NCBI RefSeq assembly: GCF_036588685.1
Contig: NC_086386.1
Coordinates: 3,348,001-3,412,000 of the forward strand
Source: Mytilus trossulus
Lineage: Eukaryota
Length of the DNA: 64,000 nucleotides
Reading direction: 5' to 3'
The translations under genes and the position numbers were made by a program. The notes beneath the pieces are model-generated. The model saw only the letters and a program-made list of their open reading frames with translations, searched no databases and was not told the origin of the DNA. This document shows positions 26,863-62,216 of the stretch, in pieces. The stretch's first letter is position 1, and each line of letters opens with the position of its first letter.

Positions 26863-29019
26863 TATAATTACATTTTTTAGCTATAATCATGAAAACACGA
26901 ATTTAATAATAGTTTTATTTACTTCACCTAGCACTTTATTGTGAGACCACATGTTATCCTGAACGAAAGTTTTATTGAGTAATGCAATTGCTTAAGGAAT
27001 AACATGTGATGTGCAGTTAGCCAATTAGAGTAAAGTATTATAATGAAACATACATCTGTTAACGTAATTATTAAATGTTAAAAGACTCCTTGAATCAATG
27101 TTACCTTGACATCATTTTTAAAAAAAAGTCTTTGTTTGCAACTTTTACCATGTACATCATATTTACATGAAGATATGTATATAATATTTTTTTCATTTCA
27201 GGTCAAAAATTAAATAAAATGTCTACCATTAACTTAAAATATCATCCAGATATTGAATCTGCTTATGCTGCAATTAGAAAGTATGAACTGGAGACCACTT
27301 CTAAGTACATATTATACTACAGAGAAGCTGGTTTCAATCAGAAAGGTAACTGTTTTGTCCCCTGCCACACAATGGCAGGAAATATATTTAATATTTTTAA
27401 AGCTTTTTTTTTCATCCTGCTAAATACAACAATACTCGTATATAGACCTTAACTTATTTGTAAAGTTCACAGCAGTAAGAAACATTAAGTTAAGGCAGAG
27501 TTATCTTCTTTCCTTTCATAAAGTTCATACAACAGGCTTGTTCTTATTGGTTTTGTAAATCCATTTAACAACAGAAAAAAGATATTGTGTTAAATTCTTT
27601 GATAATTACAAGTAAATTATAATTTTGATATATATATATACTTAACAGATAAATCATATTATTAAAGGAGGGATATTTGCAAAAAATACCATTCGAGAGA
27701 ATGTTAATTTTCACGAGTCGTAAGGCGAGGGAAATTCATTCTCAAGACTAGTAGTTAACGTTAAAAAACACATTGATGATCGTGACATTACAAACGTCCA
27801 GTCAGATAGTGTATTTTTTGGCAAACAACACGGCATAGAGGGTAAAAAAGGCTTATCCTTTTTGCTTATACCTAGGCGGCGTTAAAAAATGAAAAATTTT
27901 CTTTTGATAACAGTAAATTGGTGAAAAATACACTGGCTATCAACCAATCAAAACCAAGGATTCTTACATAAGGTGTAATTAAGTCCAAAATTATATACCG
28001 GTAACGTGCGCTGGCAATATTGCATGTGCTTACAGGTTCAGTTTCTCTTGTAGACTTGGATAATTTGGACAAGAAAAAAATATGGTGGGATAACCATATC
28101 CCCTTTGATGGTATTCCGTATTGCCTTTTGGGGTCTGAAGTGTGGGACTGTCATCACGGGCCAGACAGACACGTGAATGATAAAAAGAAACTTGTTGCCA
28201 AAAAGGTATTTCAAAATTTTCTTTTTAGCAATAAAAATAAGAAATTTATTTATTAACTTGAAAGACATTGTACATTTTACAGATTAATGTGTTAAATACA
28301 AACTAAATATATATGTTCTTTTAATGTCTTCAATAGTTAATATATTTTAACAGTTTTGATTAGAATTAGTTTAATTTATAATACTCCTATCTCTTACATA
28401 GGTTTGGTAGATTCAAGGAAGTACATTGTGCAACCTTTGTACACTGGGTCCTATAAACAAGGTGATAGGTTGTGCTGCTGGAATAGGTCACCTTTTTCAG
28501 CTTGGAAATATTTGAATAGGGCGGTAAAACTATCAGAAATATTATTCAATAAAGTTCCCACAACTGCGTCAGTAATCTTTCTTGGTCAGTGTTTTATCAA
28601 CCAATTTTCTCACATTTGACACTTTGTTATTCCACTTTTACATAACATTACATAGAAACCCAAATAATATTGGAAAAGAGATATAGGAAGATGTGTTGTG
28701 AGTGCCAATGAGACAACTCTCCATCCAAATAACAATTTATAAAAAAGTAAACCATTATAGGTCAATGTACGACCTTCAACATGGAGCCTTGGCTCACACC
28801 GAACAACAAGCTAAAAAGGACCCAAAAATTACTAGTGTAAAACCATTCAAACGGAAAAACCAACGGTCTAATCTCCATAAAAAATGAGAAACAACAAGAA
28901 ACATGTATATATTACATAAACAAATGACAACAACTGTACATCAGATTCCTGACTTAGGACAGGTGCAAACATTTGCAGTGGGAATTAAAAGTTTTAATGG
29001 ATCCAAACCTTCTCCCTTT

Positions 29020-29886
29020 TTGTCGAGCCTTCGATTTTTGTCGAAAAAGAGAGACTAAGCGATCCTACATTCCGTCGGCGGCGGCGGCCACAAATATTCA
29101 CTCTGTGGTTAAAGTTTTTGAAATTTTAAAAACTTTCTTAAACTATACTGGATTACTTCCAAACATGGACAGAAGCTTGTTTATGATCTTAAGATAGTAT
29201 CCAGAAATTAATTTTGTAAAAATAAATTCCATTTTTTCCGTATTTTACTTATAAATGGACTTAGTTTTTCTGCGGGTAAAAATTACATTCACTCTGTGGT
29301 TAAAGTTTTTAAAATTTCCATTACTTTCTTAAACTATCCTGGGTTTGTACCAAACATGGACAGAAGCTTGTTTATGATCATAAGAAAATATACAGAAGTA
29401 AATTTTGTAAAAAAATTAATCCATTTTTTCAATATTTTACTATTACAATGTATTAAATGGACTTAGATTTTCTGCCAAGAAACAACACATTCACTCTGTG
29501 GTTAAATTTAAAAAAAAATAATAACTTTCTTATACTACTTTTAATTTGTACCAAAGTTAGATAGAAGCTTGTTTATGATCAAAGCTAGTATTTAGATGGA
29601 AATTTTGTTAATATTTTGTACATGTGTATGTGTATTTTACTTATAAATGGATTTAGTTTTTTTTTCCAGTTAACATTACATACAGGCTGCAGTTAAAGTT
29701 TTTAAACATTTATTAGATTCATAAACTATCCTGGATTTTTTTCCAAACTTGGTCAGAAGCTTCTTACAATCAAAAGATTATATCAAGAATGATATTTTTA
29801 ATTTTTTTTCCCTCATTTTTGTTGAGCCTGTGTTTTTCAGCAAAAGTAGGCGAGACACTGGGTTCCGCGGAACCCTTACAAATTTT
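29020..29886 (+). mobile_element. HINE-like element inserted in a T-run inside a SINE-like repeat (28680-29930); duplicated at 53182-54048
   Basis: Host repeat is contiguous at 19431-19470. Insert has a (GGC)n tract, about 190-bp internal tandem units (cactctgtggttaaa at ~29099, ~29290, ~29492) and a 3' hairpin GGGTTCCGCGGAACCC. Confidence 0.85.
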
Positions 29887-30724
29887 GCTGAAAAAATAGC
29901 ATAACATCACAACATAGAAAAACACATGACAAAATATCAATTGGCAGACTTAACTCAATCAAAAAACATAAATTAATACATAATAGGTATACGTTTTTGA
30001 AATTTAAATTTTATGAAAAGGGTGGGGTAACAGAAACCCAATGACACCCCCTTTCAATTAAGTATTGAAGTACGTGCATCTTAAAAAAATCAGTACCCTG
30101 AGATAACCTTTTAATACTAAGGAGTCAATGAATTAAATTTAGTATTTTATAAGTTGTTATATGTGAAACACCTATAATTAATTGTGATACATAAAATTGA
30201 GAATGGAAATGGGGAATGTGTCAAAGAGACAAAAACCTGACCATAGAGCAGACAACAGATGAAGGCCACCAATGGGTCTTCAATGTAGGGAAAAACTCCC
30301 GCACCTGGAGGTTTCCTTCAGCTGGCCCTTAACAAATATGTATACTAGTTAAGTGATAATATAGATGATACATGCATGGATGTTGTATGTGCATTTTTTC
30401 CATTTTTTTTACAGGATGAGATGGAAGAAGAACATCCATACACCAAAAATTCAAAGAAAAGGTTTTTAGTTCAGAGTACCAAGAAGATGGACTGCAAGTC
30501 ACAGATCACTCTTAAAGCTGTTGTTAAGTTTCCTGACTTTAAGGTAAACTATTCTTTTTCTTTCTTAAAGTAACTATATTCCTTAAATGGAAGATACCTA
30601 AAATGTTACCAGGAAATGGTTGTTTATGTTGCTTAAAATTGTTATAACACTCAATTCATGGTATCCTGATGAACATGGAAAATTATAGTACGAGCATGCA
30701 TTTTGTACTTAAGACACATATTCT

Positions 30725-30985
30725 TTTTATGCCCTTACCTACAATAGTAGAGAGGCATTATTTTTTCTGGTCTGTGTTTGTTCGTCCGTCTGTTAAAGGT
30801 TAAAGTTTTTGGTCGAGGTAGTTTTTGATGAAGCTTAAGTCCAATCAACTTGAAAACTTAGCACACATGTGCCTTATGGTATGATTATTCTAATTTAAAT
30901 ACCATTTGATTTTTTTCCCCATTTCACGGTCTATTGAACATGGAAAATGATAGTTCAAGTGGGGCATCCGTGCACATTCTTGTTC
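30725..30985 (+). mobile_element. Short HINE-like element, same family as 37452-37932; duplicated at 54887-55147
   Basis: Shares the 5' stem-loop atgccc..acctac.atagtag..gggcat, a tccg/tctg tract and the 3' end gtggggcatcc...cacattcttgtt. Confidence 0.75.
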
Positions 30986-33443
30986 TTCATCTTCTTTTCC
31001 AATACATAGAATTACAGGTGGGGATATAATTAGTACTACAAGTAGAGTTTACTTTGTAGTAACTTTGAAAAGTACCTGTATAGCAATAATGTCCATTGTC
31101 CTATTATGACAAAAATGTTTATAGTTATTATTCATTTATATGAATATAAAAAACTGATCCATTGTTACAGGTTGATGGCCTTGATAGCACTTACAGGAGA
31201 AAAAAATGTGCATCCAACCTTAGAGCAGCCAATTTCAATCATGTAAAGAAAGACGTGAAGATTGTGTTAATTCTTCCTGATACCAAATCTCATCAGAATC
31301 ATCTAATTGGTGAAGTAATGCATATATTTATCATCTTAATACAGTGCATACAAATAATGTAAAAATGTTTATAAAGTCATTGTTAATTTAGAAATTAGTG
31401 TGTTCATTTATTAATATGAAACTTAAAAAAATGTGAAATATAATTAAAGCAATTACCAAAAAAAATATTACAGCTGAAATGATCACTGCAGATTTTAATA
31501 ACTACGAATTTTGCAATAATTTACAATTAATTTGTGTGAGTTCTTTAATTTCTTTCCTACGATCTGATTTCTTCGGTCATTCTTTTTTTGTCATACGTAG
31601 GTTCAGATGTGCAGTTTCATATTTTATTAAACATGTTAAATATTTCATTCTTATAAATGTGAAGAAAAAGATATAGTTCCTCACATTTTTTTATTTAATT
31701 ATCCAATTGTCAATGAATAAATAAAGAGAGTAACTTATCAAAGAATTCAAATATTGAAAACGTATTCAATAAGTGACCAAAGAACACAATGATTCTTGTA
31801 TACACCAGGGACAGTCTACAATGTATACTAGTGGGACTAGTCACTTATAACCATGTCTATACAAATTTGCAGACAGAACTGTGCTGTTGCTGATGTCACT
31901 TGACTTCATAGCAATTTTTTTATATTTACGAATTTTTCTTCATAACTGTACGTTCAAGTTAAACGAAAAAACATTTTTATCAAAATTTATACATTTTGTC
32001 ATTGCAAAATGCTGTTTTTGAAAACATTCCTCAGATAGTTTTATAAAATATAAGATCTTTTGAACTTTGAGGTATTTTGTTAGTGAATTACAAGTAGTGG
32101 CCATCTTGTTCGATATGTAAACCCTTCTACACGACTGGAGTGTTCTTCAAAACGATACGTCTCAATCTTATATTTTTTGTCATGGTAAATTGATATTAAT
32201 CAGATTTTATATTAACAAATATGTACTGTGAAATAAGCAAATAGCTAGTAGGTTCCTATATCAGAGATACGAAACCAAGTGTTTTGTTCAGTGGTATCGA
32301 AAGAAATGAGTCCCGTTAGTATAGAAAGTCCCTGAATACACATAAAATCAATAGGTTGTAATGTTGCTCATTGAATGTTTTCAATATATGTGAATTCTTC
32401 CATTACTTATTGATCAAAGTGGTCAAGTGACCCCTTAAGGAACTAATGTTCTTTAAATTAATTTTTTAACAATGTTTATAAATTTTTAACAATTTTTACA
32501 AAATATTTCCCACTGTCACTTCTGGGCCAATTTCATTATAGATAGAGATAATTGTAAGCAGCAAGATTGTAAAGTAAGATCCACAAACACATCACCAACA
32601 CCAAAACATAATTCTGTCATGAATTTATCTGTGTCCTTTGTTAAATATGCACAAAGACTGAGATGATCCACACAGGCTCTTTAGAGCCTCTAGTTCTTAT
32701 CATTTTTTTTTCTTCATTTTTTCCCCTATAAACATGATAAATCATTCCAATATTTTCTATAATATATCATCTGAATATTGTCGATGATATGGTTCAAGAA
32801 TGAAGTCTTTTGCAAAAGGGGGATACCATTTATAAAAAACACAAAACATTTTTTTGGATTGTTTAATGGTATGATGTTGTCATCATCTGCGTTGTTGTTG
32901 TCAGACAACCAGATCCTAATAGAGTTTAAAAAGTAAGAAATTTGTATTTATGATTTTTTTTCAGGTTTTCAAAGAATGATCAACAGAATTTACAATGTCT
33001 GGTGAGGAAATGGGAGGCTGAATATACATTGGATACTTTTTTTTTAAGACTGGGGTGAGAATTATTAGTTACCTTATGAATATAAGAAATAGGAAAGATT
33101 ATCAATGCGTTTTTGATGCTTTCTGTCTTTTTACTTTGTTTATAGGAGATTGAAGTTTATGATATTGTAAGTTTTGTTGGGAAGATATCCAAAAATATTT
33201 GAGGACACATCCTTTATGTTTGATAGATTTCCTTTATGCTATTAGAATTCCAGTATACAGTAACATATCTTGGTTACCTTAATCCATTTCTCAAATTAAT
33301 AGATATAGGAGGGTCTCTAAAGTTCTTCCTTTGACAATAAGTATGCTCTTTGTGAAAAAAAATTAGTGTTAGCTTGATGTAAATGAGAGACTGCAATGCC
33401 AAGTGGTGTTTCTTATTCTTTCTTTTTCTCTTACAATATGCAG

Positions 33444-33799
33444 ATCAGATGGTAAACAAAAAGAAAAAAGTAATGATGATGTTGAGGAAGTTCCCCAGTT
33501 TCTTTTTGTTCATCAATCGGAAACACAGAAGAGGCTTCTAAATATTTATGGCCAGGAGATTTGCTTGTTGGATGCAACATATAAAACATCGAGATATGAC
33601 CTTCCTCTGTTCTTGGTTTGCGTCAATACAAATGTTGGATATAGTGTTGTAGCGTCTTTTATAGTTGCTAATGAGAATCGCTACACCATTCAAGAGGCAC
33701 TCATTAAATTGAGAGATTGGAATCCCATGTGGAAGCCCAAATATTTCATGTGTGATTTTGATTTGAGAGAAATTTGGGCGCTTGAACAAACATTTGAAG
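33444..33799 (+). CDS. MULE transposase catalytic exon (first two Asp residues)
   Basis: ICLLDATYKTSRYDLPLF...PKYFMCDFDLREIWALEQTF. Later exons supply CDFH (CxxH) and TTNGLERQH (catalytic Glu). Confidence 0.9.
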
Positions 33800-35652
33800 G
33801 TAAACTCAGGAAAAATTCATGAAACATTGTAACTGAATTATCAATTTCATGTTTTACAAATTACCTTCGATATCACTACTAACATATATTTACTTTAATA
33901 AAAAAAAAGATTTTTTTTGCAAAATCAGCATAACTATTCAGAATAAGTGGATTTTATGCAAATTGAAAATATTATACAAACTATTGATCATTTCCTGAAT
34001 TTATGATTAACTTTAATTTTTGAATATCAATGCATTGCTTAAATTTTTAATTTTGTTTCTAGATTATATCCTCTACTTGTTGGTACGTATGATTTGGTAA
34101 GTGGGTGGTTGTGCTTTTTAATTGTTGTACTGGCATTTATATCACTATATATTCACATACGTACATACATACATCCTGAACATACATTGTACAAGCTTTT
34201 TTTAATCACACAAGCTTTTGTTTATATCACCTGCTTATTATTTTTCTTTAGATTTATGCTCTTTTCTTTATATCATGAAGAGCACATTTTCATGTCAATA
34301 CTTCATAATATGGCTGAAAGTTATTATAATGTTGTATACATATACATTGAAGGTAAACTTATAGTTTGGATAAAGAATTAGGATAGTGTTATTTTCCCTG
34401 ATTAATTTATTATTAGTTTTACCATTGTTTCAGTTCTTAAAATTTTTTAAATATTATAATCAAAAATTCAATTTCCCTTATTGTTTTCCTTAAGAGTATA
34501 AATTTCATACATTTTAATACTTATGATTTTCAGTTCCAGTTATCATAAAATGGACACATTATGGAAATCTTTCAGCTTTAATATTGTCATCTTTATACTT
34601 TTCTGATTGGTGGCTTAGTGTTTCAATATATATGTTATATATATATATATAAAGTCAGGGGCAGATCCAGCCAATTTCAAAAAAGGAGTAAAGAGGGATT
34701 TCAACTTTATACTCCCATTCAAATGCATTTATTATCCTAAAAAAAGGGGTGTCCTACACCAGGACCCTTTGGATCTGCCACTGATATAGTGTACAGTGTT
34801 ACATTCAGTGTTCTTATTTTAATTGATATTTTAGAGAAATAATTTAGTATAATTACTACTTTATTTCTAATAATTTGATGAACTAACTATCAGAAAGAGA
34901 AAACCTGCATTGTTTTTGAAAGTTTATAAATCACATTGTAAAAGTAAAAACTTTTTATATTCTGGCATATATGGTTTTTAAAAACACTTATATGAAAATA
35001 AAATACAAAATAGATAATTTTACTGCAATTATATGGTTGGTCTACCTTGTTGCATCTTACTTTAAATTCCTTATTACAATTATTAGCTGATATTTCAAAA
35101 GAATTTTATTCCTTTTAAATAAATTTTTTTTTTACACGACATAAAACCATATAGTTAACTCCTTACATTGATTTTATAAAAGTGAATTTATTGTTTATGT
35201 CAGTTGCAAATTACAGTATGAATGCATGTTACTTAGTTATCAAGTGTTTAGATGTGTTGATTTATGTAAAAGATTCTTTTGAAGTGTGCCATTGAGCACC
35301 TAAATACATAGCCTAATAATATTTTAACTTTGTAATTGAATAGAACAATTTGTATGTTTTAGGTTTAATGGTGTATCTTTGTGACTTCCATAGGGAACAA
35401 GCCTGGCACAGATGGCTAAGAGAAATTAAGCATGATTGCATTGATGAGAAAGATGAAATTAAAAAAATGTAATGCTTATTTATAAAGTTAAAAAGATATA
35501 TTTATTGTCACATGTACTTCTGAACTCATAAAAAAATACTAAATTATATAATGTAGTTGATGCTACATGATGGTTAAAATTCAATGTTACTTATTGCATT
35601 TTACCAGCAACATACAAACGTTAAGATGTTTAATTATATTTCCAACAATCAA

Positions 35653-35918
35653 TACAGCTCTTCTATAAAAGCATGCAAAACAAAACTTTGGTCGGCTTGC
35701 TTACTATGTTTGCTTGGATGGTTGCAAACAATAGGTAGGTGGAGTTTCAATATATACTGGGATTTGATTGGACATAAATTGAAGTTAATGTTTATTGTCC
35801 AATCAAATGCCAGTATATAGTAAACAAACTACCTACCTGTTGTTTACAAACATCCAAACTATCACAGCAAGCAAGTTGATCAATGGTTTGCTTTGCATGC
35901 TTTTATAGATGAACTGTA
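35653..35918. mobile_element. Foldback MITE (TA-CAG...CTG-TA, Tc1/mariner-type ends); duplicated at 60635-60900
   Basis: The whole element is an imperfect palindrome: tacagctcttctataaaagcatgcaaa ... tttgcatgcttttatagatgaactgta. Confidence 0.8.
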
Positions 35919-37451
35919 AGTATTTAGTTTGCATACAGCACATGACTATGAGTAACAGTTTTCAATCCATGACAATTCTTTTAGAGTGCATAAATGGAAA
36001 ATGACCATGTTTAAACGAAAGTAGGCTCCCTGAAAATATAGCCCTCAATTAGGAAACATTTATTGATTTTGTCATACAGTCAGTTGTGAATAAATTCTGG
36101 AATGCACCAGTAAGACAAAAATTTCAAAGTTATCAAAATGTGACATATCCGTTTGTTAGTTACATGAATTAGTTACATATTTTTTCAAATGATTTGATTG
36201 AATAATTTTACTTTCAGGTTAAGAGAAATAGCTGATGCTGATTCTGCAGAGTCATATGCAAATGCTTTGCAACAATTAAGAAGCAGTGATATTTTCAAGG
36301 CAAAGGTCTCCTTGAGAAATTGGCTCGAAAACAAATGGCTCCTGAACTGCAAGGTTTGTTAATTTAAAATTTAAATTTTGACACCAATTACCACCAGCTT
36401 AATTTTTTTGAATAGTACAGGTATATAAAAGGGATAGTAGCTACAATTTTGACAAAATTATAACCAAGTTTTATAGCTGTTATAATCAAAGATATGTACT
36501 TAAAATATAAAATAAGATTGTTGTAATGTTAACATGAACTACAGATGTGGTAATACTTCATTATAAATATTGTGTTGTGTGTCTAGTCTTCTCATTGATT
36601 ATGCATCTGTGGTGGAGAGTTGTCTCATTGTCAATCATACCACATCTTCTTATTTTTATATTATCAACAGTTGAACAGTTCAAATAACTTGCAACATTAT
36701 CACACATTTTATACAATTGAAAAGTTGTTTATTACACAATGTTATTAGGTGTCTGTTTATTATAAATTTTTCAGAGATGGTCAAAACTTTTCAGAAATTC
36801 ACTCTTTAACATCAGAGTGAATACAACCAATGGCCTTGAAAGACAACACAAAGAACTCAAGGAAAACTACTTGACAGAGTATATAGATAAATCTCTGTCA
36901 AGTATGGTGACATCATTGGTAACCAAATACTTACCAGATAGTTATGAGAGGTATTTTTTACTCTGATAAGAAATTAATTTATTGTTTGAGACCATTTGCA
37001 GCCACTTTAAATCCCCAAAATGATTACTCTCATTATTTATTAGTAGTTAGGGAATACGTACTTAATGCAATTATTGACTGCATATATTTGTTTAAAACAA
37101 TGTTAATTTTTGGTCAGTTTTATTTTGTTGGTATATTGTATTATGAATATCTCTTTTGTAATCTAATAATGTTTTAAAAAGGTTGATTGAAGCACATTTT
37201 AAGAATGAAGTGTTCTATCCTTCTGACATTATGTGTGTGTTTCTGTCAATGCTTTTACACCAATAAAATTACAAAAGAAAGCTTTCAATTCTTAGTTAAA
37301 TCAAAGTTAGAGAAGCTGATTACACCAATACCATGAATACAGTAAATATTAATGCACATGAACAGTTCCTGTTATTCAAATTGTTGATTTTTATTCAGAG
37401 ACCATGTTTGCCCATTCCTTAAGTTGTTTTGATTGTATCTCAAAGTAATAC

Positions 37452-37932
37452 TTTTAATGCCCCACCTACGATAGTAGATGGGGCATTATGTTTTCTGGTC
37501 TGTGCGTCCGTTCGTATGTTCGTTTGTCTGTCCATCCGTTCGTTCGTCCGTCTGTCCCGCTTCAGGTTAAAGTTTTTGGTCAAGGTAGTTTTAGATGAAG
37601 TTAAAGTCCAATCAACTTGAAACTTAGTAAACATGTTCCCCATGATATGATCTTTCTAATTTGAAGGCCAAATTAAACTTTTGACCCCAATTTCACGGTC
37701 CACCTAACATAGAAAATGAAAGTGCATGTTTCAGGTTATAGTTTTTGGTCAAGTTAGTTTTTGATGAAGTTGAAATCCAATCAACTTGAAACTTAGTACA
37801 CATGTTCCCTATGATATTATCTTTCTAATTTGAATGCCTAATTATATTTTTTATCCAATTTCACAGTCCATTGAACATGGAAAATGATAGTGCGAGTGGG
37901 GCATCCATGTACTTTGGACACATTCTTGTTTT
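37452..37932 (+). mobile_element. HINE-like element with two internal tandem units
   Basis: 5' stem-loop, (tccg/ttcg)n microsatellite, two about 170-bp units, subterminal inverted repeat atgccccac/gtggggcat, T-run flanks. Confidence 0.8.
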
Positions 37933-38132
37933 ACTGTATTTCAAATTAATACTTTTTACACAATTTTAATTAAATCAAATAGATTGGATGAAACTCACAA
38001 GTCAAAAGTTCAAATATTTTTTAATTTTGTTAATTCACTTTTTTCGTTTTATTTGAAAACTAATGTTATAAAATGTCATTCTATCTTATTTACCAAATCC
38101 CATTCATCATTAAGGATGGTTCTATTTTCCAG

Positions 38133-38848
38133 GTATAAAGAATACAACATTCAGTCCTTGGATAACTATAGAAAGTATTCTAATGATGTTCCAGAGTTTT
38201 TAAGAAGCCGTCCAAGAAAATTTGTTGACCATTGTTTAGCCAGAATTCCACCTGCGGCTACACTGATCCCCATTGAAAATATGGAAGAAGTTAACCATGA
38301 TCTGCTGGTTAGAAGTGTTGAGTCTGACAATTTATACCAAGTTAGACTCAATGATGATTTACCAAAATGTTCATGTCCAGATTGGAGAAAACATCACTGG
38401 CCATGTAAGCATATGCTGGCAGTCATGATGAACATGCCAAACAAAGATTGGAATACACTGCCAGAGTACTACAAAGCAACCCCTCATTTCAACATTGATT
38501 TTGGACTTCTGGAAACAAATAGAACAGAAACACTGATTGTTAACAATGCAAGCAGCTCAATGAAAGATGAATGCCAACAAGATTCAACTGCTTGCAGAGA
38601 TAACACAGTAGAAAATTCCTCTTCCAAAGCTCGAAACTTATGTTTAGACAACATTAAACAAATTACATCTAATTTATTTTGTATTAATAACAGCCAATAC
38701 CTAGAGGAGTTAAATAATAGACTGGCAGTGTTGGTAAAGGAAACGGAAATGGAAGCACCTCATCAAAATGGTCTACGATTAAATTTGCCTGCTACCAAAA
38801 AGAAGACCATAAGTAGAAAGCAGAAAAACAACCTTCAGCAAAAAAAAA
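38133..38848 (+). CDS. SWIM zinc-finger exon
   Basis: YQVRLNDDLPKCSCPDWRKHHWPCKHMLAV fits CxCx(n)CxH. Acceptor ttttccag| and donor |gtaagt. Confidence 0.9.
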
Positions 38849-39000
38849 GTAAGTTCCCCGTACAATTTTTTTGGGATAAAATTATGATTAAATTGTTGAT
38901 TTTAATGATCACCTATCTAAAATGTCAAGAACAGTTTGTATTAAAAAGATCTGCTAGGAAAAAAGCAATTAAAAAGCAGTAAGGAACAGGTGTAATAAGT

Positions 39001-39055
39001 TTTTATACGACCGCAAATTTTGAAAAAATTTTCGTCGTATATTGCTATCACGTTG

Positions 39056-39111
<56 letters not shown>

Positions 39112-40986
39112 CGAATACTTTTAGTTTTCGCACTCTAACTTTAGTAAAAGTGAATAGAAATCTCTGAAATTTTAACACAAGGTTTATGACCATAAAAGGA
39201 AGGCTGGTATTGATTTTGGGAGTTTTGGTCCCAACATTTTAGGAATTAGGGGCCAAAAAGGGCCCAAATAAGCATTTTCTTGGTTTTCGCACTATAACTT
39301 TAGTTTAAGTTAATAGAAATCTATGAAATTTTGACACAAGGTTTATGACCACAAAAGAAAGGTTGGGATTGATTTTGGGAGTTTTGGTTTCAACAGTTTA
39401 GGAATTAGGGGCCAAAAAAGGGCCCAAATAAGCATTATTCTTGGTTTTCGCACAATAACTTTAGTTAAAGTGAATAGAAATCAATGAAATTTAAACACAA
39501 TGTTTATGACCACAAAAGGAAGGTTGGTATTGATTTTGGGAGTTTCGGTCCCAACAGTTTAGGAATTAGGGGCCAAAAAGGGACCCAAATAAGCATTTTT
39601 CGTGGTTTTCGCACCATAGCGTTAGTATAAGTAAATAGAAATCTATGAAATTTAAACATAAGGTTTATGACTATAAAAGGAAGGTTGGTATTGATTTTGG
39701 GAGTTTTGGTCCCAACAGTTAAGGAAAAAGGGGCCCAAAGGGTCCAAAATTAAACTTTGTTTGATTTCATCAAAATTGAATAATTGGGGTTCTTTAATAT
39801 GCCGAATCTAACTGTGTTTGTAGATTCTTAATTTTTGGTACCGTTTTCAAATTGGTCTACATTAAGGTCCAAAGGGTCCAAAATTAAACTTAGTTTGATT
39901 TTAACAAAAATTGAAACCTTGGGGTTCTTTGATATGCTGAATCTAAAAATGTACTTAGATTTTTGATTATTGGCCCAGTTTTCAAGTTGGCCCAAATCGA
40001 GGTCCAAAATTAAACATTGTTTGATTTCATCAAAAATTGAATAATTGGGGTTCTTTGATATGCCAAATCTAACTGTGTATGTAGATTCTTAATTTTTGGC
40101 CCAGTTTTAAAATTGGTCTAAATTAAAGTGCAAAGGGTCCAAAATTAAACTAAGTTTGATTTTAACAAAAATTAAATTCTTGGGCCTCTTTGATATGCTG
40201 AATCTAAACATGTACTTAGATTTTTGATTATGGGCCCAGTTTTCAAGTTGGTCCAAATCAGGATCTAAAATTATTATATTAAGTATTGTGCAATAGCAAG
40301 TCTTTTCAATTGCACAGTATTGTGCAATGGCAAGAAATATCTAATTTCACAATATTGTGAAATAGCAAATTTTTTTTTAATTAAGAGTTATCTTTCTTTG
40401 TCCAGTATAGTAAGCAAGAAATATCTGCAAGAATTTTTTTTAATTGGAGTTATCTTTCTTTGTCCGGAATCAACTTAAATCTTTGTTATATACAATATAC
40501 AATGTATATTCACTATTTACTACCAACTGGTAAATTTAAATAATCTTTACCATTCAGTGATAACAAGCAGTTTTTTTACATCTTAATATTTTATGATGTA
40601 TTTAAATGAGTAGTAGTTGTTGCAAACTCCATTAGAATATTTTAATTGATATTAGTTTTGGAATAAGGGAAAGGGGGATGTGAATAAATAATTGGGTTCA
40701 ATTTTTCTCATTTGAAATTTCATAAATAAAAAGAAAATTTCTTCAAACATTTTTTTGAGAGGATTAATATTCAACAGCATAGTGAATTGCTCTAAGAGAA
40801 AACAAAAATTTTAAGTTCATTTGAATACATTCATTCTGTGTCAGAAACCTATGCTGTGTCAACTATTTAATCACAATCCAAATTTAGAGTGGAATCCAGC
40901 TTGAATGTTGTGTCCATACTTGCCCCAACCGTTCAGGGTTCAACCTCTGCGGTCGTATAAAGCTACGCCCTGCGGAGCATCTGGTT
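39001..40986 (+). mobile_element. 2-kb HINE-like element carrying a (GTC)n microsatellite and two satellite-like internal arrays
   Basis: Subterminal inverted repeat ttatacgaccgca (39003) / tgcggtcgtataa (40948). (GTC) repeated about 18 times at 39058-39111; about 160-bp units 39125-39740; about 120/240-bp units 39740-40260; T-run flanks. Confidence 0.88.
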
Positions 40987-42009
40987 TAAAGTTGATGCTG
41001 CTTCACCTTGACCAAAACTTTGACCTAATACAGGATAAATGAACATGATTAATAGATGGACACACAGACCGGCAAACATAATGTCCTGGTACTTTCTATA
41101 GTATTGAGGGCATAAATATAAACACTTCAAATTAAAGTGTGTAAAAGTGCTTCTTACACTAAAATTATTTCATGTATAAAGAAATTTGAGATTAAATGTG
41201 TTTTAGCATAGATGTTCATGTTCATAAGTATCTATGGTTTGTTTAGTTTTAATTGTGTGCTACCTTGACTGTTTGGAAGTTATGGCTTTTGAAAGATTGG
41301 AAAATGGCAAGACACAATTTAATGTAATAAAAATCTGGTTAACCGTCTTTAAGACAGCCTTTTGATTAATTTGAGTAATGTAGAACAGTTGAAGCAATAT
41401 TAAATGCTTATTAACTTTAATTCAAATTGCAGGCAATTTCACAAGACGTCTTACCAAGAGATCTGCAAGCATAAAAAAAGTGCCATTTATGCGAAGACCA
41501 CATTGGAGAAAGTACGCAAAGACACTATCACCGGTTAAAATGAGTTCAAATGTATATTCTGCAGGTAATAGTTATACATTGTTTGAATTTAGTTACCCTT
41601 TTATAATTGTACAAAGAATTAAGGGAGACAAATCTTACATTTATCAATTATTGTGTAAAAATATGAGAATCATTGTAGAGTGTTTGATCTTATATTGTAA
41701 ATGATCTTTTCTCGATCATTCATTGAGGATTGTTGTGTTACCTTCCTTTTCTTATCTTATAATTCTTTTAGCATATATTCTCAAAAAAATGGTAATATAA
41801 AAACTTACATGATATATGTAATCAGATAGATCAACATTTATGTCCCCTACTAAAAAATATGAGAATAGCCTATGCACATTAATTTCATTCTATAAGGTTT
41901 TTTTTAATGAATTTCTAATGGAAATCATATATTCCTACATTCATATAAGTGTACTACAATACATATATAATTTTGATAAAGCTTGAGTCTTTCTGAACTT
42001 TTTAATTGA

Positions 42010-42149
42010 TTACACTGACTTGACTGTTAGTTATTACTGCTCTATGACTATTGCAACTCATTTACAATTCTAAGCAAATTGCAATTTGTTATATAAAACC
42101 ATAAGTTGCAATCGGTGGAGAGCAACACTAACAGTCAAGTTACAGTAAA
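42010..42149. repeat. Small degenerate foldback element
   Basis: ctgacttgactgttag...ttgcaact pairs with agttgcaa...ctaacagtcaagttacag. Confidence 0.65.
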
Positions 42150-42939
42150 ATGTAACTATTGAGAGTGGAGAAATACGGTACTGAAAATTATAAAAAAAAA
42201 ATTGATGTTTTTATTATTGCAAAAAATGCAACAGGGTTATAAACTGCAATAATTAAAAAACTTCCAATTTGAAATCTTTTATATGAATCAAAAAGGATTT
42301 TTCAGGATATCACAAAAAATAATATCTCATTTTAGTCTAAAAGGACATTGAATAATTTCTGAATTTACAAATCATTTGCCAAGGACAGACATTTCAAGAG
42401 TTAAAAGAAAGATTTATTAACAAGCAGTTGGGAAATGTAAAACAGCACATACTTCTATTATTTGATATATGGTTCAAGGAACAAACCTGCTAATGCATAA
42501 AAGAATTTAACAGAAAATGAATACTACAGCTGCCATTGAATTTTTAGGGCTAGGCAATGAAGAGTCAAAGGATTCAATGACAATCAGCCTCACAGAAATA
42601 GATAGAAGAAATGGTAAGTATGAATTTTTAAATTGTTCTAACAATAATTTATATTTTCCAAAACAAATAAATGATGGTGTAGGCACAGTAATGCATTTTG
42701 AAATTTTTCACACGATTAAATTATAGTGCTAGATGTTTTTGATTCTTACAATCTATCAATGTTAGTTGACAATATACTTCTTTGAAAATAATTCATAAAT
42801 TTATAAGCCATAGATTTGTTGGAAATTTACACATGGCCTGCCTGGGTTATGATATTGTAATTTTTGAGATCTGTGTCTGTGAAGTATTAATGAAATTGGA
42901 ATTCAACTTTATCATTTGTATACTTTTGTATAATTTCAG

Positions 42940-45703
42940 CAACTGACTTGTTGAGAAAAATTCAGTCAATTGGAAATGCATCCCATTATATTCTGGCCAA
43001 GGTTTATGGGGTAAATGTAACAGACATTGATATCGCATCACTTTTTGGGAATCGTTGGTTAACTGATCAGGTAAGTTTTAAAATATTCAAATATTCCAGA
43101 TTAATTCTAATATTTTATATATTACATTTTTGAGTTGAAACCTATCAAGATCATGATTTTTTTTTACTTTGGTGGACATTGAAAATTGAAAATGGCCATG
43201 GAGGCCCTAATTTTCATAGAAACTATAGATTTTTTTGATTTTTTTTAAATTTTTAATTTCAATGGATGTGGTTTAATGCAAACTTTCTTTGTAGGATTGA
43301 TCATTAGTAGGTGCCTTCAAAAGATCTAAAAGGGTAAAATTGATGGATATTTTAATGACTTTTTTTAACAACATTTTGTATTGAAGATACATACTAGTTT
43401 TAATGTATATACTATATTCACTTCAAGGTGTGGAAGAATGTTATGACTTTGATGGTGTAATACTATACTAATACCTGCATTAAAGTGGTAACAATTGAAA
43501 ACTGTATATTCTTTAAGAATTATAAATACTATAATCCTAAACTAAGGTTCTAACAGTAATTTAAGTGCTGATATATTTAAATTTTAAAAACATCACATTT
43601 TTATTAAGGTTATTGATGCCTACTTGGCTGTACTTTGTCAAGCACAACAAGACAATGGAAGAAATATCTTGCATATAACTGCTGCAGTAATGACCAACAT
43701 ATGCAAAGGAGATTCAATTGGAAATCAGAATCTATTCCAAATGGTAAAAGTCTATTGATTTAATGAACATTCAGTTAAAATCAATGCTGATACACTATCA
43801 TAACATACCAGGGCTAATAATATACAGCATATTACATTTATTACAGTCAAAGGATTTTGAGAAAAATTTGAATTGATGATTTTACATGCTAAACATACAT
43901 GATATACTAGTTAAAAACATGCATTGTTTTAATTCTGTCTTCTTTTTTTAATGATTAACAACCAAAATAATAGCAAGGAACAAAGAGACTTAAAACTTAA
44001 AATCTATATAGAAAAAACAACAAACCATTATCTACATGTAAGATTTTTTTTTTATATATTTTTAGAAAATCTTAACAGATTATGAGATGATATGTGGAGT
44101 GTATAATCAAGCAGGGAATCACTGGGACCTAGTGGTAGTTGACATTTAATAACATGCATGTCAGCTTCTTGTGATTTTGATTTCTGATTTTTTACATGAT
44201 GTACCCTCATTTCTTTTTTTACTGCCTTTTAAGATGATATTAGGAATAGCATGTAGCAGTCATCACTGGAAATCTAAGTTTTTTTTTATACCCCTCCCCC
44301 TTTAAAAAGGGGGTATACTGTTATAACTCTGTTGTCTATTTGTCAGTCTGTCATTCCCAAATTTTGATCACATTTTTCTCAGGAACTATAATACAAGGAT
44401 ATCTGAAATTTGGATTCAGGGTCTATAAAAGTCAGCCATATCGTGTGTTGTTTTTTAGATTTATCACTCAACTACTTCCTGTTAACCAAAATATTTCGAC
44501 GGGTGTATCATCAGTGAGCAGTAGCTCACAGTTCTACTTGTATTTTTAAATTATTTTTTTTTTTAGATATTAACACCAACTGATGGACGAATACAGTTTT
44601 ACAATCCAATGGGTTTCGAGGCACCAGTTGCGTATCAAGTTCAAAGAAACTGGAGGTACTTTATATTTTATGTATTGATTGTTGTATGGCTGTTTATTGG
44701 ACTTATTATGTTTAACCATTGTCTCTCCATCTGTTTGACTGTCCATCCTCATCATGTGGGACTATTTCTGATATGACATTGAGGATTTATGTAACTTTAT
44801 TCTTTAAAAAGCAAGGAGCTTATCATGGGATCCTGGCACAGCAGAATATTTTATAAGATCTGCAAATCTATGTATACAACATGAAAATAGTTATATATAT
44901 AGTCAAATAAGTGAAAATTGCTAACGAAAATAATTCTATTATCAGTTTGAAAACAGCAGACAACATATAGTTTTCTTTTGAAGGTCAAATGACTTTTTTT
45001 ATATGATTTGACAACATTTTTTCATTTCTTTCAGTGACTATTTGGCATATAGAACCCACTTATTTGCAGAAAAAACAATAGAATGGAAATTGTATGTTGA
45101 AAAACATGCTTTGCAGTTAGATGGTTACAATTGTGGTGTATATTGTTTAATGGTAATTAGTCTGTTATCTTTTTCCAATTGTTATGCTTATTTTAATTCA
45201 TTCAAATGCTTTGGATACAACATCTTGATGTTTTTAATGAATTAAAATTGTATCAATGTATAAGACCAAAAGACACAGAAATAAATAGGTCACCATACAG
45301 CCTTCAAGAATGATCAAAGACCATTCAGCATAGTCGGCTACAAAAGGCCCCTAAATGACAAATGTAAAACAATTCAAGAAGAAAACTTACATCCTAATTA
45401 ATGTACAAAAATATGAACCAAAAATAAATATGTAACACAGCAACAAATTACAACCACTTTGTACAGTTATTAATAAGGGATGATATGGAGATATTAATAT
45501 ATATGTAAATAATTATAAATGATGATATTCACATATTATTATTTTCATGGAAATATGTGAAATAAACACCATGAACTATAAGTTATGCCAAATATTGTAG
45601 TTTGCAGAGAGAATACTGTCAAAAAAAGAATTAACAGGCATTACACAAATAGAGGTCCAGGAAAAAAGGAAAGAAATTGCAGAGACCTTATTACTGTATG
45701 AAG
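42940..45703 (+). CDS. Ulp1/SENP-like cysteine protease domain (6 exons)
   Basis: SLFGNRWLTDQVIDAYL ... GNHWDLVIL ... IQFYNPMG ... QLDGYNCGVYCLMFAERIL. Confidence 0.87.
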
Positions 45704-46375
45704 GTAATTATATAGAAATTAAAATATCTTATGAAGAATTGACTTTCAGAGTATTTCTCTCCTTGTACAGTACTTTAAAAAAAAAATCCTTTGTATGTAT
45801 GTTTTTGTATAATCTGATGGATATATTTGATAATTTTCACAAATTCAGATGCATTCATCCCTCATTTTTTTTCAAAGACCAACCTTAAAATTAGTATTTT
45901 ATAATCCACAGTTATAGGGGAAGAGATAAAATCTTCTTTTACCATCTTATATATAATTTTTGTAAACATTGAACATTTTTATTTAGATTCTACAAATGTG
46001 TGACAGTCTTGAGATTTCAGAAAATATCAGTGTTTATCATCAATTTCTCAGCAAATTCTGTTTGGAAAATTAGATCTTTACAAATGTAAATTGTTTTTTG
46101 ATTGAAACTTGTCCATCAAATGATCATTGTTATCAGCATATTTTCAAGTAAACTTCAATTATATTCTTTCCTTATTTCATAATTGAACCATCTGAGCACA
46201 CTCAACCTCTCTTCAACAAAGAGTGTCACTCAAAACTCAAATGCAGTTGAACTGTTGCATTCAATTCAAATATATATCAACCATTTGGCTGATCTGAAAT
46301 TAACAACTCTGACTGTTTTATTTTTATTTGTTTTTAATTTTGTAATAATTAAAACTTCCAAAAAATGTCTTGCAG

Positions 46376-47065
46376 TTTATATGAAAGATGCTTGTCCCTG
46401 CTGTGGATTTAATGTTCAAGAACAGCCTTGTGTAAGTAAAATCATATGGTATAGAATCAAGACATTCGTTTACAACAGACTACTGTAAATAAAGAAATTA
46501 TTCCTGCATTTATTCTTCTGTTTTTTGAAGAATGAAAAAGAATGTGAGATGATTTTTTTTGTGATTTCATGTTAAATCTGTATTGAGATATATGTATTAG
46601 ATATCAGAATGAGAGTCTTAATAATTGCAATAATCACATAGCATTAAAAAAGTTGTAATAATTTCTAAATTAACAGTATATACAAGGAAAAATTTTCATT
46701 GTTTGCCCCTGTTGTGGCGTAGGAAGCATTGAGTATGCTTTTATTAATTGAAATTATTTAATACTGTATATTCTGGCATTTGTTGAAGCCAGCACTCAGC
46801 TAAATGTTTTAAATCTATATTTGATTGTGTCTTACAATATCTATACCTGCTTATTATATGTAATGATTTTAACATACTGATGTCAACGTAATATAATTGT
46901 TTTATTTTCAATTTTGTGTATAATTTTTATATAAACAAATATTTTATGCAGATTGGTTGTTTAATTTGTGGTAGACACTTCCATAAACTTCCTTTCTGTG
47001 TTGGTGAGAGCCTTGCCAAGGAAGATGCTAATTTTTTCACTTGCAAGATGTGCGAAAACAATATC
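46376..47065 (+). CDS. PHD-like finger (2 exons)
   Basis: CPCC...IGCLICGRHFHKLPFC...FTCKMC gives a C4HC3 pattern. Confidence 0.75.
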
Positions 47066-47171
47066 GTAAGTAAATGTCAATTTTGAAGTTCATATGATAT
47101 AAAAATATGAAGATTTAGTATGAGTGATGGCTAATGAGACAACTCTCCATGCAAAAAGTTTACACATTTAT

Positions 47172-48042
47172 AAAAACTTCTCCCCTGAAACTACTGGACC
47201 AAATTTAACCAAACTTGGATACAACCATCACTAGGGTATCTAGTTTAACAAAGAACATGTCCCCGCCTGCCAACCAACATGGCTTAAAATAGAACATAGG
47301 GATAAAATGCAGTTTTTGGCTTACATCTCTGACTTAAGCATTTGACAATCAGATGTTGGTTGCTGCGTCTGAATTAATAATTTTATGGAAATTTTGCAGT
47401 TTTTTTGTTATTATTTAATATTATTATTAATAGAGATAAACTGTAAACAGCAATAATTCTTCGGCAAATTAAGATCTACAAATAAGTCAGACATGACCAT
47501 AACTTTCAGTTGACCCTTAAGGAGTTATTGCCTTTTATAGTCAATTTTTTTTTAAATATCACAAATTTTTGTAACCTTTTACAAAAATCTTCTCCTCTGA
47601 AACTACTGAGACAAATTCAACCAAACTTGATCATAATCATCATTAGGGTATATAGTTTAGAAAATGTGTCTGACAACCTTGCTTTCCAACCAACATGGCC
47701 GACATGGCTAAAAATAGAACAGGGGTAAAATGCAGTGTTTGGTTTATATCTCTGAAACTAAAGCATTTAGAGCCAATCTGACAGTGGACATAAATATTCA
47801 TCATATTAGAATTTATCTACACTGAAATTTTCAGACATATACCCATTGTTGGGTTTCTGCCCCTGAGTTAGTTATTGTACGAAAATTTTGCAGTTTTTTG
47901 TTATTATCCTAGATATCATTATAGTATCTAATAATATCTAAAGATCTAATGCTCCAAATTATGTTTTTACCTTAATTTACATGATTTCCAAAGCATCAGT
48001 AAATACAGGTGAGCCACACAGGCTCTTGAGAGCCTCTTGTTT
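47172..48042 (+). mobile_element. HINE-like element fragment with about 410-bp internal repeats; related pieces at 32411-32697 and 57268-57679
   Basis: Repeated cttctc(c)ctgaaactactg...gctaaaaatagaaca...atatctctga. The 3' end cacacaggctctt.agagcctct.gtt is shared with ~32670. Confidence 0.7.
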
Positions 48043-48688
48043 TAAATTAATAGGCACATGCCTCTCTGGTATCAAAGTGCAATTGGTATACCAAAATTTC
48101 TTTATATACATGAATTGTATACTAAGAACTTTATCCATTCTGGATTTGAAAAGCAGACCCTTTTAACCTTTTGTGAAGTATCAGTTGTTTGTCAAACATT
48201 CTTTTTTTTTTCAGATAACTTGTTATATATCAACATACTAAACTTCATAATTGTTTTATGCATTAATGTTTTATCTTCTGCAATTTAAATTTAATTGAAA
48301 ATAGAAAAATAATTATCCTGTTCAAGAAAAAAATATAAATTATAAAATATATATTTTGTTTTCATTTATCTTAAAATTGTTATTTCAACCAGCAATTTTA
48401 ATTTGTTGTAAGAAGTCAATAAAAAAAATCACAGAAAAGCTGAAAACACTCCTTAAAAAAGTGATATCATTATTAACCAGACATCAAATAAAAATAAAAT
48501 TGAAATATTATTTAACCACATATTTTTTTTATATAAAGATTCCAGACACAATAGATTTAGGTGGAATATTGGAAGAAAAGCCTGTTAAAGATTCAATTAA
48601 TCCAGATCAATGTAAGTAAAGCTTAACAAATCTACAAAACTTTTTCTGCTTCATTCATCCCTAGTTATTTTCATTTCATTGATAATTT

Positions 48689-49147
48689 GTTATACCCCCG
48701 CTTTAAAAAAGGGGGGTATACTGTTTTACCTCTGTCTGTCCTTCCGTCAGTCAGTCAGTCGGTCCGTCCCATGAATATTTTTGTCGCATTTTTCTCAGCA
48801 ACTACCATACAAGGATTTCTGAAATTTGGTTTCAGGGTTTATCTAAGTCAGCTATATCGTGTGATGTGTTTCCAGATTGATCACTTAACAAATTCCTGTT
48901 TACCGAACACGTGTATGATTTTACACATGATAGCCAAGTTGAAAATTTTCGTCACATTTTTCTCAGGAACTACAATACAAGGATTTCTGAAATTTGGTTT
49001 CAGGATTTATATAAGTCAGCTATACCGTGTGATGGGTTTTCAGATTCAATACTTGACAACTTCCTGTTTACCGAACACTATTAAATATATTATCCACTTG
49101 CGGCGGGGGTATCATCAGTGAGCAGTAGCTCGCAGTTTCACTTTTTT
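48689..49147 (+). mobile_element. HINE-like element; shorter relative at 44283-44545
   Basis: tataccccc...gggggtata stem-loop, (gtca/gtcc)n, two about 170-bp units, 3' gggggtatcatcagtgagcagtagctc hairpin. Confidence 0.8.
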
Positions 49148-50016
49148 ATAAACTCCTTCATTTTAAAAGGCAGACATACAGCATTAAATGTATCATTTAT
49201 GTCTTTATACAATGCTATATTTATGACTTATAAACTCTCCTTGACATTGTGAAAACAATTTGCAGGAATTCAAAAAACTTTAATATGTACTTTATATTTC
49301 CTGATAAGTTTTTATACTAGGCAAGTAACATAAGGAATTACCATTGTCTGTTTATAGATTTCTATTATATGTAGGTGTATTTAAGCCTATGTTCACCTGT
49401 ATTTTTTATGTACATCTTACAGACTGTGAACCAAAACCAGAAATGAAGAAGACTTTTACCGGAACAACTGCCCTGTTTGTGAAAAACCTCATTGAATCTG
49501 TAAGACAAATAATATGGACTACTAGCATAAGTAACATTACTGTTTGATGGTCCATAAAATATTTTATATGATACTATTATAACACCTAAACCAATTGATT
49601 TCAACACCTGTCTTATTACTGCAAAGTTAAATGACTCAACCAAATGGTATGCAACTTATACACAATATGTATTACCACAAAACTTACATCAAGTTGGAAT
49701 TTGGAAACTGTCATTTCACTAGTTGAGTACCTTTTAAATGCTGAATTTGTCATTTCTATATTGTCTTTCTTATAAATAAAAGATGTCTGCCATGACCAAA
49801 TGTTATAGAACTTAAAAACTTAAAACATTGTTACAAAATAAACAGATCAAGCTTAAATTTGGGTTGCATAACTTTTATTAGTCATGTTCCTTTTAAAATG
49901 GATAAATGGAAAAATAACTGAATTTGTTTCTTTTTACTTCTTAAATATAAGAAAAAAAGATGTTATATGATTGCCAATGAGACAACTCTTCACAAGAGAC
50001 AAAATGACTGCACAAT

Positions 50017-62000: not shown

Positions 62001-62216
62001 AATGATTACTCTCATTATTTATTAGTAGTTAGGGAATACGTACTTAATGCAATTATTGACTGCATATATTTGTTTAAAACAATGTTAATTTTTGGTCAGT
62101 TTTATTTTGTTGGTATATTGTATTATGAATATCTCTTTTGTAATCTAATAATGTTTTAAAAAGGTTGATTGAAGCACATTTTAAGAATGAAGTGTTCTAT
62201 CCTTCTGACATTATGT
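50017..62216 (+). repeat. Segmental duplication, copy 2 (12.2 kb), retains the 820-bp segment missing in copy 1
   Basis: Identity begins at aaaggttggtgttgg and ends at ctgacattatgt. The left junction truncates a SINE-like repeat and the right junction enters a different repeat family. Confidence 0.97.
51381..61932 (+). CDS. CaRF-MULE gene copy 2: exons 1-10 in frame (CaRF-like domain plus complete DDE core), 3'-truncated with no SWIM, Ulp1 or PHD exons in this window
   Basis: Exons 51381-51507, 52198-52367, 54577-54705, 55333-55476, 56641-56855, 57947-58036, 58426-58781, 60345-60450, 61200-61335, 61757-61932. Read-through of the last donor stops at 61948 (about 554 aa). Confidence 0.8.

Follow-up and report, generated by a model that had tools for sequence, protein, structure and literature searches.

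In plants, Mutator-like elements (MULEs) that carry a protease often encode it as a separate gene. Among vertebrates, parts of the transposase considered below recur in single-copy host genes, namely CARF (ALS2CR8), with an ALS2CR8 domain, and ZSWIM1 and ZSWIM3, with an RNaseH-like domain and a SWIM finger according to the Pfam family names; these genes are not known to carry terminal inverted repeats (TIRs), target-site duplications (TSDs), a protease or a PHD finger. In plants, Ulp1-like proteases go together with KI-MULEs (Kaonashi) and with further MULEs (Hoen 2006; van Leeuwen 2007; both as cited in PMC2836005), and Bao, Kapitonov and Jurka (2010, PMC2836005), on the authority of Repbase Reports from 2008 and 2009, also ascribe such domains to hydra and lancelet Mutator transposons; their Figure 1e is an alignment of Ulp1 and PHD domains from Ginger1 and Mutator transposases. 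Ginger1 of Hydra likewise has a C-terminal Ulp1 domain, and Ginger1-9_HM has a PHD finger as well, but its core is a Gypsy-integrase-like DDE domain and not that of a MULE, with a length of 2.6-7 kb and 0-4 introns (PMC2836005). An OTU domain in MuDR-6_HM, and a PHD finger and 9-bp TSDs in Rehavkus, were described by Dupeyron et al. (2019, PMC6446971), and the lengths published for MULEs amount to a few kb, with arthropod MULEs measuring 1.4-10 kb in a 2026 survey (PMC13359780). Here we describe a locus in a 64,000-nt stretch of the Mytilus trossulus genome (GCF_036588685.1, contig NC_086386.1, positions 3,348,001 to 3,412,000; hereafter the window; ~30% GC, AT-rich, zero Ns), which we read, with a probability of roughly 80%, as a ~47-kb (45-49 kb) autonomous-type MULE DNA transposon whose transposase gene is predicted to encode a single polypeptide.

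The MULE superfamily is defined by an RNase-H-like DDE domain, a TSD of 8-11 bp (typically 9 bp) and TIRs, and the element has all three. Alignment of its two ends revealed an imperfect TIR of 47 bp in which 36 terminal bases pair, and which includes a 12-bp palindrome, ATGAATATTCAT, at 25892-25903 that is unique to the TIR within the window. A genome search recovered exactly five left and five right termini. Every copy starts at the base corresponding to window position 25858, and the right ends likewise share one common base. The MULE exon itself has at least five near-identical genome matches, two in the window and the others on C3, on C12 and at 66.8 Mb of C14 (C14:66.8 Mb), the chromosome that also bears the window. 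Perfect 9-bp TSDs flank three copies, with the sequences GGCAGAAAA (the outer, or host, copy of the window), GGTTTTTAC (C3) and CACAATAAA (the inner copy). Such TIRs and TSDs indicate cut-and-paste movement by a DDE enzyme. The C3 copy (46.7 kb) and the C14 copy (48.9 kb) are 98-99% identical to the window sequence, in introns and exons alike; the host copy spans 64.6 kb including nested material, or ~45.5 kb without the nested copy. A search for a haplotig with an empty site for the host copy found none. A first-pass annotation, made from the sequence of the window, had offered a domesticated chromatin regulator as an alternative to a transposon. A MULE-derived, ZSWIM/CARF-like host gene, segmentally duplicated and immobile, would be in keeping with the low copy number, the many introns, the purifying selection on the exons and the head-to-head position relative to a housekeeping NDK gene. 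However, the five dispersed copies end at identical bases, carry TIRs and in three cases perfect TSDs, and lie on three chromosomes in unrelated flanks, and one of them is a nested, internally deleted derivative with an empty site. The TSDs and the empty site refute domestication, to which we now give almost no credence.

What had been taken for a second gene copy in the window is this nested transposon, with its own TSD and empty site. It sits in the intron downstream of the PHD exon of the host copy, inserted at 50019, and the C3 copy provides the uninterrupted empty site, with a single CACAATAAA 9-mer. The nested and host copies are 100% identical over 11.4 kb (stretches of 6,557 and 4,825 bp), and the insertion is therefore very recent. 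The same identity could be the mark of an assembly artefact or of a plain tandem duplication, yet the second copy begins on the first base of the element and finishes on the last, is bordered on both sides by a 9-bp sequence of which C3 has a single copy, has an internal deletion of its own, and keeps 818 bp, including exon 5, that are missing from the host copy. Either explanation is thus very unlikely. The host copy has since lost its 818 bp. As the nested transposon retains only exons 1-10, it would be mobile only with a transposase supplied by another copy.

The closest database proteins, which mark the genome as that of a Mytilus-type mussel, are the M. galloprovincialis model VDI37107.1 (P0001, 764 aa; 92-100% identity per exon) and the M. 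edulis model CAG2210188.1 (P0004, 348 aa; most exons 97-100% identical). For the gene, exon cores were anchored by tblastn with these two models, with the M. trossulus paralogue P0156 and with P0151, a homologue from Mercenaria, and exon borders were chosen by enumerating GT/AG sites for phase fit. The joined chain was assessed for length, phase and stops only, and Pfam was run exon by exon. With exon 5 borrowed from the nested copy, 21 GT-AG exons form a phase-consistent chain of 3,366 nt (1,121 aa) with no internal stop, in a gene that spans at least 30 kb within the element. The first-pass annotation had proposed 23 exons and a coding sequence of 3,576 nt (about 1,191 aa); the 21-exon chain stands, whereas the two linkers placed between the SWIM and protease exons gained no homology support, since tblastn with 14 homologues against 38849-42945 gave chance-level matches only. 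The exon-11 donor (38848, consensus GTAAGT, phase 1) joins the first protease acceptor (42940) in frame, so that linker exons are unnecessary. The reading frame proposed for 27219-49547 proved not to be intact in the host copy: the 818-bp deletion removes the 208-nt exon 5, which shifts the frame and brings in a stop at codon 202. All the motifs quoted for it do lie in open plus-strand stretches of that interval, and one reading frame carrying the DNA-binding domain, DDE core, SWIM finger, C48 protease and PHD finger is open in one genomic copy. A search with P0004 found no transcript-derived proteins. Residues 1-53 of P0001 form an N-terminal extension without counterpart in the element, probably an annotation chimera with an upstream exon of another gene.

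The transposase half of the predicted protein gave profile matches on single exons. ALS2CR8 was matched at 28005-28253 (38.4 bits), 30349-30570 (31.9 bits) and 56524-56856 (39.2 bits) against a cut-off of 28.9, and across the three exons these matches cover profile positions 6-90 and 166-231. The stretch 33373-33819 matched ZSWIM1-3_RNaseH-like with 48 bits (cut-off 27.2) and MULE with 37.5 bits (cut-off 27.6), and SWIM was matched at 37891-38979 with 38.4 bits (cut-off 19.6). The D, D and E motifs of the DDE core and its CxxH motif were all found, and the SWIM exon 11 has 1302 homologues. Of the profile checks suggested in the first-pass annotation, those for ALS2CR8, MULE and SWIM succeeded on single exons; the protease exons taken alone gave no match and the PHD exon fell below threshold.

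Several observations weigh against an intact, mobile element with one multidomain product. Taken singly, the protease exons had no match in Pfam, and the PHD exon reached 16.5 bits (E 0.009) against a cut-off of 24. In the window protease, in P0151 and in P0156, the Asp of the catalytic triad is replaced by Asn (FYNP). The model P0001 stops 7 residues past the SWIM exon. Comparison of the flanks of the C14:66.8 Mb copy did not find a matching TSD, and ongoing activity would be attested, among five copies, by a single 100%-identical nested one.

The early stop of P0001 would also be explained by two products, with a transposase that ends soon after the SWIM finger, through read-through to the stop at 38980 or polyadenylation, and a protease-PHD protein that either arises from an internal promoter of its own or is an alternative isoform. 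The open stretch does run beyond the exon-11 donor to that stop, the linker exons between the two halves are candidates only, and the M. trossulus paralogue family (P0156, P0269) includes isoforms without the SWIM half of the transposase. On the other hand, the exon-11 donor has the consensus GTAAGT and the same phase as the first protease acceptor, the intact copy has the whole 21-exon chain open, and many species possess single proteins that contain both parts, in one case encoded on a contig free of introns. We consider two products unlikely, and retain the single predicted polypeptide as the better reading.

The assignment of the protease and of the PHD finger is supported by homologues. 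P0004, near-identical to the window gene, scored 20.0 bits against Peptidase_C48 (cut-off 20.7), and homologues that align in order with the exons scored higher: 31.2 bits for P0156, 44.4 for P0151 and 47.2 for the Solemya protein P0046. The match in P0156 covers residues 463-624, and P0156 aligns in order with each exon from 42933 to 47074, as do the protease and PHD exons with P0151. P0151 in turn matched the solved structures of SENP1 and SENP2 (best E 1.8e-5); in its alignment with SENP1, both the His and the Cys motif are retained, while Asn stands opposite the catalytic Asp. The window protease shares the P0151 residues NHW (44117), FYNP and QLDGYNCG, so that His, Gln and Cys are kept. 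Asn or Glu at the position of the triad Asp occurs in other clan-CE proteases. As for the finger, its C4HC3 pattern spans the exons 46376-46431 and 46952-47065, and the homologous fingers of the Solemya proteins P0046 and P0047 pass the Pfam PHD cut-off.

The gene had been proposed to end at 49547, which is probably not its true end. In the M. trossulus RefSeq paralogue P0269 (1,141 aa), ~440 residues follow the PHD finger, and this tail aligns in order with four open stretches (X1-X4) downstream of the 49547 stop and of the nested insertion, past the window. The splice from the PHD-exon donor to the X1 acceptor is in phase 0 and had the top score among the options, and the X1/X2 splice restores an FGDG-YI motif that is continuous in P0269. 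Both the intact copy and the host copy (G000:C14:3417866-3424722, beyond the window) keep all four stretches open. On this evidence, 48539-48611 and 49423-49547 represent either artefacts of exon prediction or an alternative 3' end of the gene. The protein most likely has a further tail of ~350-400 aa with a second PHD-like finger, which would probably bring its full length to ~1,400-1,450 aa. The tail matched no Pfam family and nothing in the ESM Atlas, and no relatives were found among the fetched non-Mytilus homologues; an AlphaFold model from a 7-row alignment had a mean predicted local distance difference test (pLDDT) score of 30.6 and was unusable. An OTU-like motif that exon X2 had seemed to contain was dropped, as it found no support.

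The five copies differ in their state of preservation. The host copy of the window is dead, with exon 5 deleted, the frame shifted and a foreign 2-kb repeat in an intron as well. A 1.8-kb insertion interrupts exon 6 of the C3 copy, and the C12 copy is degenerate. In the copy at C14:66.8 Mb (G000:C14:66,835,326-66,884,180, minus strand), all 21 exons that were checked survive with their GT-AG sites, and the 3,366-nt frame is open. Relative to this copy, the window sequence has changes at 9 of 3,019 exon sites and 154 of 16,425 non-exon sites (Fisher p 1.2e-4); relative to the C3 copy the counts are 15 of 3,158 and 198 of 18,525 (Fisher p 1.2e-3). Exon divergence is thus 2-3 times below non-exon divergence, which supports the exon model, and the codon changes comprise 9 synonymous and 4 non-synonymous ones. 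These counts point to purifying selection on the exons, and such constraint fits selection along an active lineage.

The first-pass annotation had left the novelty of the domain combination to a search. The combination is not new: PMC2836005 records Ulp1 in animal Mutator transposons, and RefSeq and GenBank hold predicted proteins of this architecture from bivalves, echinoderms, Ciona and Branchiostoma. The search across animals that had been suggested showed the fusion to recur, with protease and transposase joined in several bivalves, three echinoderms and Ciona. A PHD finger is present on several proteins of this set and in Branchiostoma, and only some of these proteins have every domain. 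The order ALS2CR8, MULE, SWIM, Peptidase_C48, PHD is identical in Solemya velum KAL5013870.1, Ciona intestinalis LOC144746767, Lytechinus variegatus LOC121411820 and Mercenaria LOC123553026, which are annotated as uncharacterised and show 30-40% identity over the SWIM exon and the transposase part; those fetched are without the Mytilus C-terminal tail. One fusion homologue of 1,197 aa is encoded on a contig of 4,267 bp, which leaves no room for introns, and is therefore a continuous open reading frame. The domain fusion is real, old and already recorded, and, being widespread among animal MULEs, is in itself no discovery. What is unusual is the size of the element together with its intron-rich gene. 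The MuDR-type elements of Hydra magnipapillata and Branchiostoma floridae (Bao and Jurka, Repbase Reports 2008/2009, as cited in PMC2836005) likewise have an animal Mutator transposase with a C-terminal Ulp1 (C48) domain, a likeness drawn from their published description; the Mytilus element, for its part, measures ~47 kb, with a gene of at least 30 kb and an extra C-terminal tail. With the plant MULEs it shares the pairing of a MULE with an Ulp1-like protease, in a different host kingdom. In contrast to the CARF and ZSWIM host genes, it is mobile, with five copies that have common termini and TSDs.

The 3' part of the element (62209-64000 and onward; 80602-85651 in extended coordinates; 38423-43215 in C3 joined coordinates) carries tandem repeats with a period of ~1.1 kb in at least three units, which the tandem-repeat finder TRF misses because its longest period is 500. 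In Rehavkus (Repbase; PMC6446971) a minisatellite adjoins the 3' TIR, whereas the Mytilus array has ~1.1-kb units at a distance of 5-9 kb from the right end; the Mytilus core also matches Pfam MULE and ZSWIM1-3 directly, and the two are set apart here by their described structure. The last 20 kb of the element, towards its 3' end, yielded no further gene with a Pfam family at cut-off; the best match was a weak zf-RVT (E 0.027) within a C3-specific insertion.

As to how such an element might work, a single mRNA would join all exons, and the resulting transposase would combine an ALS2CR8/CaRF-type domain, an RNase-H-like DDE core with CxxH, a SWIM finger, a clan-CE Ulp1/SENP-like protease and a PHD-type finger. 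If the protease and finger are active, the likeliest roles of the module would be interaction with chromatin or the target site and, as the element transposes, the removal of a ubiquitin-like modifier. DNA transposition is generally regarded as inefficient already at sizes far below ~47 kb. It is a speculative and rather improbable idea that an element of ~47 kb with a gene of at least 25 exons still moves whole in mussels, and that the Asn-variant protease and two PHD-type fingers may enable this, for instance by steering to promoters or by removing silencing SUMO-type marks. The family is cleanly bounded, very large and very low in copy number, with one intact copy and dated defective and nested derivatives. 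A 47-kb MULE family with a 100%-identical insertion into its own sister would provide a natural case for the mobility of large cut-and-paste elements, and a good one for probing the role of the protease-PHD module. The gene models of M. edulis and M. galloprovincialis in the databases are fragments, an annotation that the present result corrects.

Table. Features of the element and its transposase gene, in window positions unless another coordinate system is named.
Feature	Position	Strand	Basis or remark
Left 9-bp TSD of host copy, GGCAGAAAA	25849..25857	.	Partner at G000:C14:3438483-3438491, beyond window
5' 24.2 kb of host (outer) copy	25858..50019	+	Resumes beyond window, after nested insertion
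Left TIR of host copy	25858..25904	+	36/47 bases equal reverse complement of right end
Exon 1, start codon	27219..27345	+	Matches P0001; tblastn and splice sites
Exon 2, ALS2CR8 (CaRF-type DNA-binding domain)	28036..28205	+	Pfam E 1.6e-9
Exon 3, ALS2CR8	30415..30543	+	Pfam E 1.6e-7
Exon 4, ALS2CR8 middle part	31171..31309	+	tblastn to P0156 and P0151
818-bp deletion junction	32410..32411	.	Exon 5 removed from host copy; stop at codon 202
Exon 6	32965..33054	+	tblastn and splice sites
Exon 7, DDE core, first two catalytic Asp motifs	33444..33799	+	ZSWIM1-3_RNaseH-like E 1.5e-12, MULE E 3.4e-9
Exon 8, CDFH motif	35363..35468	+	Motif, tblastn, splice sites
Exon 9	36218..36353	+	tblastn to P0151
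Exon 10, TTNGLE motif (catalytic Glu)	36775..36950	+	Motif, tblastn, splice sites
Exon 11, SWIM zinc finger, donor phase 1	38133..38848	+	Pfam SWIM E 8.5e-10
Foreign 2-kb repeat, 161-bp tandem units, intron after exon 11	39005..40985	.	Missing from C3 and C14 copies
Candidate linker exon, 132 nt, phase 1 to 1	41433..41564	+	Phase fit only, no homology
Candidate linker exon, 66 nt (84 nt from 42530)	42548..42613	+	Phase fit only, no homology
First protease exon, WLTDQV	42940..43070	+	Acceptor phase 1; homologue alignment
Protease exon	43609..43743	+	Homologue alignment, splice sites
Protease exon, catalytic His (NHW)	44066..44134	+	Homologue alignment
Protease exon, FYNP motif, Asn at catalytic Asp position	44567..44655	+	Homologue alignment
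Protease exon, oxyanion Gln and catalytic Cys (QLDGYNCG)	45035..45152	+	Homologue alignment
Protease C-terminal exon	45601..45703	+	Homologue alignment, splice sites
PHD-type finger, first half (CxxC)	46376..46431	+	Homologue alignment
PHD-type finger, second half (C4HC3), strong GTAAGT donor	46952..47065	+	Pfam PHD E 0.009, below cut-off
Penultimate exon of first-pass annotation, doubtful or alternative 3' end	48539..48611	+	In M. edulis model P0004
Last exon of first-pass annotation, with stop, doubtful or alternative 3' end	49423..49547	+	In M. edulis model P0004
Left 9-bp TSD of nested copy, CACAATAAA	50011..50019	.	Partner at G000:C14:3417113-3417121
Nested, internally deleted sister element	50020..64000 (to 69112 extended)	+	19.1 kb; exons 1-10 only
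Exon 5, ALS2CR8 C-terminal part, 208 nt	56648..56855	+	Pfam E 9.6e-10; in window, nested copy only
Internal deletion junction of nested copy	62209..62216	.	Intron after exon 10 fused to 3' repeat region of element
X1	C3 joined coordinates 27649-27837		Conserved with P0269
X2	C3 joined coordinates 28594-28785		Conserved with P0269
X3, second PHD-like finger	C3 joined coordinates 30550-30915		Pfam E 0.008
X4	C3 joined coordinates 33832-33930		Conserved with P0269

The neighbouring nucleoside diphosphate kinase (NDK) gene lies at 25577-25804 on the minus strand, with a second exon near 22199-22354 (Pfam NDK E 4e-12 and 7e-8). Only 54 bp separate its start codon, at 25804, from the left end of the insertion (64.6 kb), and the element is therefore located in the promoter or 5' untranslated region of NDK. 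MULEs favour the 5' ends of genes, and the position beside the NDK start would fit this preference.

Other repeats accompany the element. Near either end of the foreign repeat at 39005-40985 lies one arm of a 10-bp inverted repeat (ATACGACCGC and GCGGTCGTAT). This foreign repeat also contains tandem units, of 161 bp and of ~130 bp, along with a long microsatellite of CGT type, and further copies of it lie on C14 and C12 outside the element; presumably it is akin to the satellite-carrying repeats of bivalves of the Helentron or miniature inverted-repeat transposable element (MITE) type. The insertion that splits exon 6 of the C3 copy is a repeat of the type found at 47345-47924, of which C12 and C3 hold numerous copies. 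Short interspersed repeats in the introns of the element, also present elsewhere in the window and the genome, include those at 19107-19444, 28679-29021 and 52841-53183. Finally, ~20 further loci carry MULE cores that are 28-59% identical, many with open frames, for example C6:50847989, C125:17668, C192:7896, C4:40851677, C1:14865984, C6:65367764 and C9:70911867 (all in G000), so that the genome holds several related ALS2CR8-MULE families.

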